Origin: Histomonas meleagridis 2922-C6/04-290x
Lineage: Eukaryota > Protista > Parabasalia
Direction: 5' to 3'
Assembly (NCBI GenBank): GCA_020184695.1
Contig: JAANOX010000116.1
Coordinates: forward strand, 76,750 to 140,749
Length of the DNA: 64,000 nt
The notes beneath the pieces are model-generated. The model worked only from the letters and a program-made list of their open reading frames with translations. It made no database searches and was not told where the DNA came from. The stretch's first letter is position 1. Each line of letters opens with the position of its first letter. A program made the position numbers and the translations under genes. This document shows, one piece after another, positions 32,101-35,342 of this stretch.

Positions 32101-32503
32101 TCAAGAAAAATTAGACACAATTGGTTTTGGTTTTTATTGAATAATGAAATGCTACATAAATATTTTTAATTGAAATATTTTCGATATTCCGTGACAACTT
32201 AAAGAAATTATTTAATCAAAGAAGTATTTGGTTTTATTCAATAAAATATTTGATGATGAAAAGTATTATATTTTTTTGCTTGCCTAATGACATGAATAAA
32301 TCTTTAAAATATTACTGTGCATTTCTGCTTTAATAAGTCATTTATTTATAATAGCATCAAATGATAAAGAAAAATCAAAATTAAATATTGAGTAATATTA
32401 TGTATCAAAACTTTTTGAATTTTATGTTTTAAATAAATTTTTATAATTTTATAAAATTTACTTCAAAAAGCTGGTTTTACATTGGCACTTTTATAACGGT
32501 CAT

Positions 32504-32531
32504 GGCGGTTTGCGGGTTTGGTCGTTCCTTT
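32504..32531 (+). promoter_or_regulatory. M3 (Myb-like) and M5 (CCTTT) core promoter of RPL3
   Basis: GGCGGTTT at 32504-32511 and CCTTT at 32527-32531, 6 nt before the ATG; matches the Trichomonas M3/M5 core promoter motifs. Confidence 0.65.
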
Positions 32532-32537
32532 TTTCTA

Positions 32538-33725
32538 ATGTCTCATCGTAAGTACAGTGCTCCACGTCGTGGTTCTCTTGGTTTTCTTCCACGTGGTCGC
32601 GCCTCCCATGTTCGTGGAAGGATAAGGTCATGGCCAAAAGATGATCAATCCAAGCCACCACAACTTCAAGCATTCCTTGGTTATAAAGCTGGTATGACAC
32701 ACGTTGTTCGTGAAGTTGTTCGTGCTGGGTCCCGTCTTAACAAGAAGGAAGCTGTTGAACCAGTTACACTCATCGAAACACCACCAATGGTTGTTGTTGG
32801 TCTCATCGGTTATAAAGAAACAGTCCATGGTCTGAAGCCAGTTACTACTGCCTGGGCTAGCTTTGTTGGTGAAGAAATGAAGCGTTGCTATTACAAGAAT
32901 TGGGCTCAATCCAAGCAAAAGAAGGCCTTCGGTAAACTCGATAAGAAGGCTGATGACATGAAGAAACGTATCCAAGACATCAAGGAACAATCCTCAGTTG
33001 TTCGTGTTATCGCTCACACCCAACCAAAACTTGTCAAACTTGGTTCCCGTAAAGCCGAACTCATCGAAATCCAAATCAACGGTGGTGATGTTGCCGCTAA
33101 AGTTGACTATGCAGTCAAGCTCCTTGAAAAGACAATCAATGTCGGAAACGTTTTCGCAGAAGGTGAACAAATCGATCTCATCTCCGTTGGCAAAGGCCGT
33201 GGTTGGGAAGGTGTTATCCATCGTTTTGGTGGCAAGCGTCTTCAAAAGAAGACCCATCGTGGTCGTAGGAAGGTTGCCTGTATTGGCCCATGGCATCCAA
33301 TGAGAGTCCTTTGGACCATTGCACGTGCAGGTAACAATGGTTTCCACCACAGAACCGAAATGAACAAGAGAATCTACAAGCTCCAACTCGTCGAAGGCGG
33401 AAAACTTGATGAAAGTGGTTCAACTGAATATGATATCTCCAAGAAGTCAATCAACCCAATGGGTGGCTTCGCTCATTATGGTAACATCACAAACGATTTC
33501 GTTATGATCAAAGGATCTGTTTGCGGTGCTGTAAAGAGAACCATTACACTCAGAAAGACAATCAACGCTAACACAAAGAGAATCGCAACAGAAGATATCA
33601 ACCTCAAATGGATCGATACTGCATCCAAGTTCGGCCATGGAAGATTCCAAACAAAGGAAGAACGCAACAAGTTCCTCGGAAAGCTCAAGCTCTCAAAGGT
33701 CGCTGCTGAACAAAAGAAGGAATAA
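32538..33725 (+). CDS. RPL3: 60S ribosomal protein L3 (uL3)
   Basis: MSHRKYSAPRRGSLGFLP, GYKAGMTH, RKVACIGPWHP, KFGHGRFQT. True ATG is at 32538. Confidence 0.98.
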   Translation: MSHRKYSAPRRGSLGFLPRGRASHVRGRIRSWPKDDQSKPPQLQAFLGYKAGMTHVVREVVRAGSRLNKKEAVEPVTLIETPPMVVVGLIGYKETVHGLKPVTTAWASFVGEEMKRCYYKNWAQSKQKKAFGKLDKKADDMKKRIQDIKEQSSVVRVIAHTQPKLVKLGSRKAELIEIQINGGDVAAKVDYAVKLLEKTINVGNVFAEGEQIDLISVGKGRGWEGVIHRFGGKRLQKKTHRGRRKVACIGPWHPMRVLWTIARAGNNGFHHRTEMNKRIYKLQLVEGGKLDESGSTEYDISKKSINPMGGFAHYGNITNDFVMIKGSVCGAVKRTITLRKTINANTKRIATEDINLKWIDTASKFGHGRFQTKEERNKFLGKLKLSKVAAEQKKE

Positions 33726-34092
33726 ACAACCACAAATTATTAACCGAAATCTTTTCTTAACTTTATTTGAAAGTGTAACGCATAAACGTTCTCTAATATG
33801 TGGAAATGAATTCGTATTGACATCATAACATTTAGTGTGACTTTGTTCCTTACAAGGAAAGCAAAAATTAAATGAAGTTGAGTTACATCTAATTTTTTTG
33901 AATCCAGTTTGAAATCAAAATTTAGATAATTAAATCTCATATCAAATAATCTTAAAACAATTTCAGTTGAAGAATTAACTTCAAGTTAAACAAGAAATTC
34001 ATTACAGCTTCTTTTACTAAAAAAATTTTATGATTCCATTTTTCATAAAAGATTTTCAAAGCTTTGAAGAAACTGTACTGACCAAGCCAATA

Positions 34093-34284
34093 CTAGTTTG
34101 GCGTTTCTGATGATGTGGTACCTTGTTTTTGTTGTAATAATTCCTGAAGCATTTTGACTTGTTCCCACCTACTTTTAGAATTAATAACGTCAGCAGATAC
34201 TCCAATTTCTAACAATCTTTCTTTTAATTCAGCAAGAGTTAACGTACGAAGGTCTCCACCGGTGGAGACAGATCCGGATGACAT
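34093..34284 (-). CDS. 63-aa mini-protein homologous to an internal helical segment of TAF1
   Basis: TGGDLRTLTLAELKERLLEIGVSADVINSKSRWEQV aligns without gaps to TAF1 [36 protein letters not shown] (recalled). Two Inr-like elements (TCATTC, TCATTTT) lie immediately upstream of the ATG. Confidence 0.7.
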   Translation of the reverse strand: MSSGSVSTGGDLRTLTLAELKERLLEIGVSADVINSKSRWEQVKMLQELLQQKQGTTSSETPN

Positions 34285-34544
34285 TTCAAAATGAAAGAAT
34301 GACAGGTGATATAAAAAAGTGCAAAATTTTGAAGTCTGATTTTGCCTTTCACGCGCACACTGCTGATATTCTCTTACTAAAAATATTAAAATGACTGATA
34401 TAACTAAGTCTATTCAATTCTTATTTTTCTTTTTTGCATTATAATTAATAATTGAAATAATTAATTAATTGTTTTTGTAAAGTCAGAAGAAAAATATAGA
34501 ATAAGTTAAATTACAAACAAAAACAAAAATTTACTCAAAAGACC

Positions 34545-35342
34545 TTAGAAATCCTTGTAAAGTTGTTGCATTACTTCGCGTGCAGAAGGTCTTTCCTTTG
34601 GATCTTTCTTGAGCATTCCCATTATTGCTCTTGTAAGTTCGGTTGATACCTTTTTCTCTTCGAGGAGTTTAACATTTGGTTCATTGTATAAAACGTTGAT
34701 ACTGTATTCATATTCATTTCCGCCATCATATGGAAACCTTCCTGTGAGAGTTGCGTATAAGCAAACACCTAATGAGTATATGTCTGACTTGTAAGAGTTT
34801 GAACCAATTCTGATTTGTTCGGGAGCTAAATACATATATGTTCCACGTCTACCGTTAAGAGGGCCACCCTCAACAATTTGTGAAAGACCAAAGTCACAAA
34901 GCATTAATTCATCGCAGTTTTGTTTTGCTTTGAGTATTATATTTTCGAGTTTGATGTCATGATGAATAATTTTGTGAGAGTGCATAAAATCAACGGCCAT
35001 AAAAATATTACGAAATGCTTTCCTGACCTTTGTTTCTTTTAATGGCCCGTTTTTATTAATGAATTCGTTAAGATCAATTGATCCTGGTTCCATAACAATC
35101 ACAAAATGTTTTTTTGTTTTAAATGAATCAAGATACTGAACTACTCCAATAGTGCTACATTGCATGTGGATTTTTACCTCGTTTTGGAATTGTTTTTCAT
35201 TAAATTTATCAAATGGAATTTTTTTTAAAACGACTTCTTTGTTTAAATCTGTGCTCCTACATAAGTAGCATTCTGAATATGCGCCATCCCCAACTTTGCA
35301 AATTTTTTCGTATCTTTTTTCCGATGTATTTGTTCCGTCCAT
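34545..35342 (-). CDS. CAMK-group Ser/Thr protein kinase (non-RD)
   Basis: GDGAYS, VVLK, HHDIKLEN, DFG, GTYMYLAPE, DIYSLG. Confidence 0.9.
   Translation of the reverse strand: MDGTNTSEKRYEKICKVGDGAYSECYLCRSTDLNKEVVLKKIPFDKFNEKQFQNEVKIHMQCSTIGVVQYLDSFKTKKHFVIVMEPGSIDLNEFINKNGPLKETKVRKAFRNIFMAVDFMHSHKIIHHDIKLENIILKAKQNCDELMLCDFGLSQIVEGGPLNGRRGTYMYLAPEQIRIGSNSYKSDIYSLGVCLYATLTGRFPYDGGNEYEYSINVLYNEPNVKLLEEKKVSTELTRAIMGMLKKDPKERPSAREVMQQLYKDF

Follow-up and report, generated by a model that had tools for sequence, protein, structure and literature searches.

Previously, the initiator-touching part of TAF1 was recognised solely as a stretch inside one very large TFIID subunit. In human TAF1, it spans residues ~992–1039 (1872-aa numbering), where the DUF3591 region (PF12157) has its C-terminal end, and it is contained in the structures 6MZM, 6MZL, 4RGW and 7EGH of the Protein Data Bank (PDB). 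Domains with a small helix-extended loop-helix fold, namely SAP (PF02037), LEM/HeH (PF03020, PF12949) and Rho_N (PF07498), commonly bind DNA or RNA. A further point of comparison is IBP39, the initiator-binding protein of trichomonads, which is a far larger, two-domain protein. IBP39 binds the trichomonad initiator and interacts with a TBP (PMC8871863).

Here we describe a mini-gene of the parabasalid Histomonas meleagridis whose product resembles the TAF1 segment alone. It lies on contig JAANOX010000116.1 of assembly GCA_020184695.1, one of two H. meleagridis genomes (PMC9615429), within a 64-kb window, by which we mean the whole stretch of DNA analysed. The ORF of 63 codons and the unrelated flanking genes named in the original prediction are both present. 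The ORF occupies positions 34093–34284 of the minus strand, opens with ATG and encodes 63 aa before a TAG stop, which is included in the span. RPL3 (32502–33725, plus strand) converges on its 3′ side, and a protein kinase gene (34545–35342, minus strand) ends 260 nt upstream of its ATG. The suspicion that gene callers could miss such an ORF proved justified, as the NCBI annotation of GCA_020184695.1 leaves it unannotated, with no gene call between RPL3 and the kinase, and an exact look-up in a collection of 15 billion proteins does not contain the 63-aa protein; a word search with the same protein returned no match either. The locus is one example of a conserved micro-protein gene overlooked by annotation. 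We consider it probable that this is a transcribed micro-protein gene, in which a paralogue of the TAF1 module has turned into an independent gene, rather than a piece cut from TAF1. Its product would be one autonomous TAF1-type module with short disordered tails.

Resemblance to TAF1 and predicted fold

The TAF1-type helix-extended loop-helix module, as delimited by alignment and fold model, covers residues 11–47 of the mini-protein (34144–34254, minus strand). The original prediction had aligned the ORF without gaps to human TAF1, counting 15 identities in 35 positions; phmmer against the PDB reproduces this alignment. Residues 7–51 of the ORF align gaplessly with human TAF1 990–1034 (1872-aa numbering), and the 15 identities fall within ORF positions 7–41, including DLR.L.L, GV and SRWE. 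At E values up to 10, human TAF1 chains alone were matched in the PDB (E 0.023–0.057). No similarity to IBP39, structures of which are in the PDB, was seen in this search, and the likeness to IBP39 would be limited to a possible common target.

A profile search had been proposed as a check on the relationship, and it gave a significant match to TAF1. Profile A2, made from ten mini-protein modules with no TAF1 included, matches human TAF1 residues 992–1039 in the PDB over profile positions 5–52 (E 2.7e-11). The next natural protein after TAF1 is the SAP domain of Hcc-1 (E 0.035), and the hits to a few designed helical repeats are confined to 20 residues. The signature of the module, DLRxL[ST]xxELxxxLxxxGxxxxx[IV]xxxxRW[EDQ]x[VI], is shared with human TAF1 in its DLRxL...G...RWE framework. 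TAF1 modules from metagenomes reach 41–59 bits with A2, and reversed sequences give no match. Because most of these metagenome TAF1 loci were preselected by a pattern derived from the signature, it is the PDB match that serves as the independent test.

Among 1.84e9 representative proteins, phmmer with the 63-aa protein finds a TAF1 (P0008) at E 2.7e-4 and ~49–50% identity. This protein carries the JGI name TFIID subunit 1 and has both DUF3591 and a bromodomain, with the module where the DUF3591 profile comes to its end. A degenerate DNA pattern of the module, run on JGI metagenomes, returned 11 loci, nine of which look like TAF1 proper by their flanking sequence, and further mini-genes were not found by this pattern. 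Five of these loci were scanned with Pfam; the DUF3591 profile ends inside the module in four of them. In the fifth, L013, an exon fragment holds the module and a downstream bromodomain, as is also the case in L015. The claim that only the module from the C-terminal end of DUF3591 is present is upheld by these scans together with the A2 match. Language-model features of the mini-protein point independently to DUF3591 fragments. A Pfam scan of the 63-aa protein at E up to 10 does not report DUF3591 (PF12157), of whose 444 profile positions the protein can span only ~the last 40. Taken on these profile comparisons, the homology of the 63-aa protein to the TAF1 segment is real.

Unlike human TAF1, the Histomonas protein consists of the module alone. 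The DUF3591 core, the TAF7-binding barrel and the winged helix are missing, and TAND, zinc knuckle and bromodomain(s) have neither a Pfam match nor room in a protein of this size, encoded by an mRNA of ~300 nt without joints. Within the 64-kb window, DUF3591 was not found in the six largest ORFs (a TOR-like PIKK, a RhoGEF-Kelch protein, an ABC transporter and others), and the module occurs only once. The degenerate DNA pattern matches the window once, at the mini-gene ORF, and gave 0 matches in 100 shuffles.

A single-sequence AlphaFold2 model of the mini-protein has a pLDDT of ~90 for residues 11–50, with helices predicted at residues 17–27, 31–35 and 39–55 and disordered tails. This three-helix arrangement is like that of human TAF1, the predicted model superposing with an rmsd of 1.3–2.0 Å over 41–44 residues. 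The best Foldseek match is TAF1 in TFIID lobe C (7egh_A, rmsd 1.3 Å, 41 columns, 34% identity), followed by SAP domains. VIA likewise places TAF1 first (6mzm_A 992–1035, Z 6.5, rmsd 2.0 Å), with the Rho N-terminal domain and the Hcc-1 SAP domain (both Z 6.4) as near-ties and the emerin LEM domain at Z 5.4; an Atlas shape search returned Rho_N and SAP proteins. The predicted fold of the module is of the SAP/LEM/Rho_N type.

In contrast to these families, the Histomonas protein stays below every Pfam threshold. LEM (PF03020) scores E 0.06 with 13.4 bits vs a cut-off of 24, and SAP (PF02037) gives no match at E up to 10; one relative (P0011) meets the SAP model at E 0.065 only. TAF1, and not the SAP, LEM or Rho_N families, has the DLR start and the invariant RW pair as well. 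A separate observation concerns P0010, a JGI protein of 238 aa with three Rho_N/SAP repeats, whose opening DLRxLTVxxLKE is common to the mini-protein family; this sequence likeness hints that the TAF1 module and Rho_N/SAP domains may be more deeply related.

Relatives of the mini-protein and its possible function

The Histomonas gene would belong to a small family that comprises single-module proteins, tandem two-module proteins and one multidomain protein. Single-module proteins obtained by phmmer from the 1.84e9 representatives include P0007 (61 aa), P0009 (56 aa) and P0011 (72 aa); the family members P0012–P0016 come from a profile search. The single-module relatives span 53–72 aa, which is a Histomonas-like length, and they have in common an N-terminal MSxGS tail, 44–51% identity and the invariant G, R and W. 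Two modules in tandem are found in P0003, P0006 and P0012 (~103 aa) and in P0005 (155 aa); P0003, P0006 and P0005 are phmmer matches as well. A linker rich in Q and E connects the two modules of these proteins, whose contigs, among them loci L007 and L008, are short, AT-rich metagenome sequences from eukaryotes.

The single-module relatives are stand-alone ORFs at metagenomic loci L002–L005, on eukaryotic contigs of 25–43% G+C, mostly AT-rich. Two of them, L003 and L005, show stand-alone relatives in genomic context. Pfam identifies a Rab-like GTPase, present with L003, and a GH5 cellulase fragment as neighbours on the mini-gene contigs. A TCAT motif stands 10–35 nt before the ATG in most of the metagenomic mini-genes, which only hints at a parabasalid origin. 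The close variants L002 and L005 differ by five synonymous and five non-synonymous codons overall, and by four vs two within the module core.

The module has also been found in an unrelated setting. On a metagenome contig of 64% G+C, an open frame of 1281 aa (L012:27-3869, plus strand), one of the 11 loci returned by the degenerate DNA pattern, has the order R3H, module, EH/EF-hand, with the module at residues 694–741 (46.7 bits to A2). The tandem proteins and this R3H/EH frame show that the module exists outside TAF1. The segment is now seen as an autonomous, mobile domain, which occurs as free mini-proteins, as tandem pairs and within an unrelated R3H/EH protein.

As regards function, the original prediction had noted that this TAF1 segment was proposed to contact the initiator, and the segment does hold residues listed as contacts. 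TAF1 residues 972, 996, 1022 and 1023 are given as initiator-binding from PDB 6MZM, the list being that of a review figure legend and a medium-resolution cryo-EM model (PMC7111264). R13, R39 and W40 of the ORF align with human TAF1 R996, R1022 and W1023, and the numbering of 6MZM itself, in which VIA puts the module at 992–1035, agrees with this residue numbering. R39, W40 and one glycine are invariant in the family alignment, and almost every member also has the DLR arginine. Of the four initiator contacts listed, three are thereby, on this alignment, hallmark residues of the family.

The best-supported role suggested by these comparisons is that of a small nucleic-acid-binding factor, possibly acting at the start site. 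The mini-protein would bind nucleic acid, with promoter DNA close to the start site as the likeliest target, and the contact would be made by the conserved arginine of DLR together with the RW pair. It may work alongside the lineage's IBP39/TBP machinery or a reduced TFIID. On the other hand, folding rather than DNA contact could be the reason why the DLR and RW residues are conserved. The Histomonas protein has a pI of 5.2, within a family range of 4.8 to 11.1; this lack of a conserved net charge argues against strong unaided DNA binding.

A role in protein docking, in which the mini-protein is an adaptor or regulator and the module binds a protein partner instead of nucleic acid, is rather less probable, and yet it is a serious rival. 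It is modelled on the SAP-like C-terminal domains of MANF/CDNF, which bind BiP, and on LEM domains, which bind BAF; CDNF/MANF SAP-like domains with BiP and the emerin LEM domain with BAF are among the structural neighbours of the module. The acidic to neutral character of the Histomonas protein and the variable pI of the family are in keeping with such a role. Against it, the nearest relative by sequence is the very TAF1 segment listed as a DNA contact, the module of L012 adjoins the nucleic-acid-binding R3H domain, and tandem duplication would be typical of weak DNA-binding modules. The mini-protein is a small, tractable reagent for finding what the module recognises alone.

Independent gene or split subunit

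A free copy of a TAF1 segment might be a subunit fragment or a repurposed module. Since the tandem forms and the R3H/EH protein indicate that the module behaves as an autonomous domain, a repurposed module is likelier than a split subunit; with the module found outside TAF1, a split is unnecessary to explain the free copy.

If TFIID were nevertheless split in this way, parabasalid TAF1 would no longer have the final ~45 residues of DUF3591, and the mini-protein would supply them in trans by docking on the TAF1/TAF7/TAF2 lobe. We regard this as unlikely, even though the module coincides exactly with the C-terminal end of DUF3591 and the residues listed as initiator contacts are retained in it. 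The Histomonas ORF is also as close to the TAF1 P0008 (~49%) as to the other mini-proteins (44–51%), and TAF1 is reported for Trichomonas vaginalis, along with several further TFIID subunits (PMC3218828), so a complex on which the mini-protein could dock may exist. A simple split, however, does not explain the tandem two-module proteins and the R3H/EH protein. Moreover, the TAF1 chain runs on past the module into zinc knuckle and bromodomains, and therefore a split would need three pieces. A search for long module-bearing proteins (A4, with P0008 as first row and all 623 columns scored) returned only P0008 and its relative P0017, and reached no parabasalid TAF1.

A broader proposal is that the start-site-contacting element of parabasalid TFIID is a separate polypeptide of 6–7 kDa. 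This free module would either make up in trans for what a truncated TAF1 lacks, or work against or together with IBP39 at the initiator, and the tandem versions of other protists would be its higher-affinity forms. We hold this to be improbable as it stands. The mini-gene gives a concrete test of TFIID rearrangement in parabasalids.

Transcription of the mini-gene and its surroundings

The mini-gene is represented by a discrete poly(A) transcript. A 294-nt RNA contig, found in both of the runs X3 and X4, comprises 271 nt templated by positions 33998–34268 and a 23-nt tail. Seen on the plus strand, the tail is a run of 23 T before the templated part, absent from the genome; it marks a minus-strand RNA that ends at 33998 and is polyadenylated there. 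The 3′ UTR accordingly measures ~95 nt (33998–34092, minus strand) up to the poly(A) addition site. A TAAA at 34013–34016 (minus strand), 15 nt before the cleavage site, is a candidate trichomonad-type polyadenylation signal, which we take to follow the rule for T. vaginalis mRNA 3′ ends. Contig depth over the mini-gene (122 and 75) is comparable to that over the kinase (289 and 99). These transcript data are assembled contigs from a single study, in which the mini-gene contigs stop at 34268, 16 nt short of the ATG.

In X3 the kinase mRNA is polyadenylated at 34511, apart from the mini-gene transcript. In X4 the kinase contig extends down to 34352, and a gap at 34269–34351 remains before the mini-gene contig; the stretch 34352–34544 covered by this contig would be an alternative 3′ end or read-through towards the mini-gene promoter. 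The mini-gene contigs show no splice joints and no loose end at 34268. In the RNA runs over this stretch, RPL3 has a depth of 1e4–8e4 vs ~1e2 for its neighbours, intergenic DNA is uncovered in X3 and X4, and the runs behave as poly(A) RNA. On present evidence, the mini-gene is a real transcribed gene, and it stands alone as originally claimed, with no link to a longer ORF.

The tandem initiator-like elements of the original prediction are present as described, though they are common by chance. Upstream of the ORF, the minus strand reads ...TGTCATTCTTTCATTTTGAA-ATG. It includes TCATTTT (34288–34294), the A of which is 8 nt before the ATG, and a second motif, TCATTC (34297–34302), with its A 16 nt before the ATG. 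Of random 40-nt windows, 24% contain the pentamer TCA[CT][TA] at least once and 2.7% contain it twice. It stands before six of the 23 long ORFs of the window, the first ATG being a crude proxy for the true start; as this is the background rate, the motif lends no independent support. Likewise, the window holds 63 ATG-ORFs of 50–90 aa, and a length of 63 aa is not unusual in DNA of 30% G+C. ORF length and initiator-like motifs are each weak alone; it is the discrete transcript together with the profile homology that raises the observation above chance level.

That the ORF is non-functional, either a decaying TAF1 fragment or a chance ORF in a non-coding or read-through transcript, is very improbable: the many short ATG-ORFs of this AT-rich window, the initiator-like motifs that are insignificant by themselves and the one contig of run X1 that spans the whole intergenic region would fit it, but the mini-gene has a discrete poly(A) mRNA with a depth similar to that of the kinase, an intact frame with a confidently predicted fold, same-length relatives that keep the MSxGS tail, 44–51% identity and the invariant G, R and W, and synonymous changes at conserved core positions (L002 vs L005).

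Several observations concern the neighbouring RPL3 gene. Its open frame contains a first ATG 12 codons upstream of the NCBI start (395 aa, MSHRK...), at 32502–32537 of the window, and the longer form is probably not real. The stretch before the start of the NCBI model (~32495–32537) and the stretch before RPS17 at another locus (L001, ~1489–1530) have a motif in common, GGTTTGGTC[CG]TTCCTTT, which sits a few bases before the ATG of both RPL3 and RPS17, with CGGTT further up. Both upstream stretches are without a TCA-type initiator motif, and the common motif may be a promoter element of ribosomal-protein genes. Finally, the 3′ part of RPL3 (33400–33716) shows many alternative letters, fragmented short contigs and very high depth in all four runs, which suggests several RPL3 copies or strain variants.
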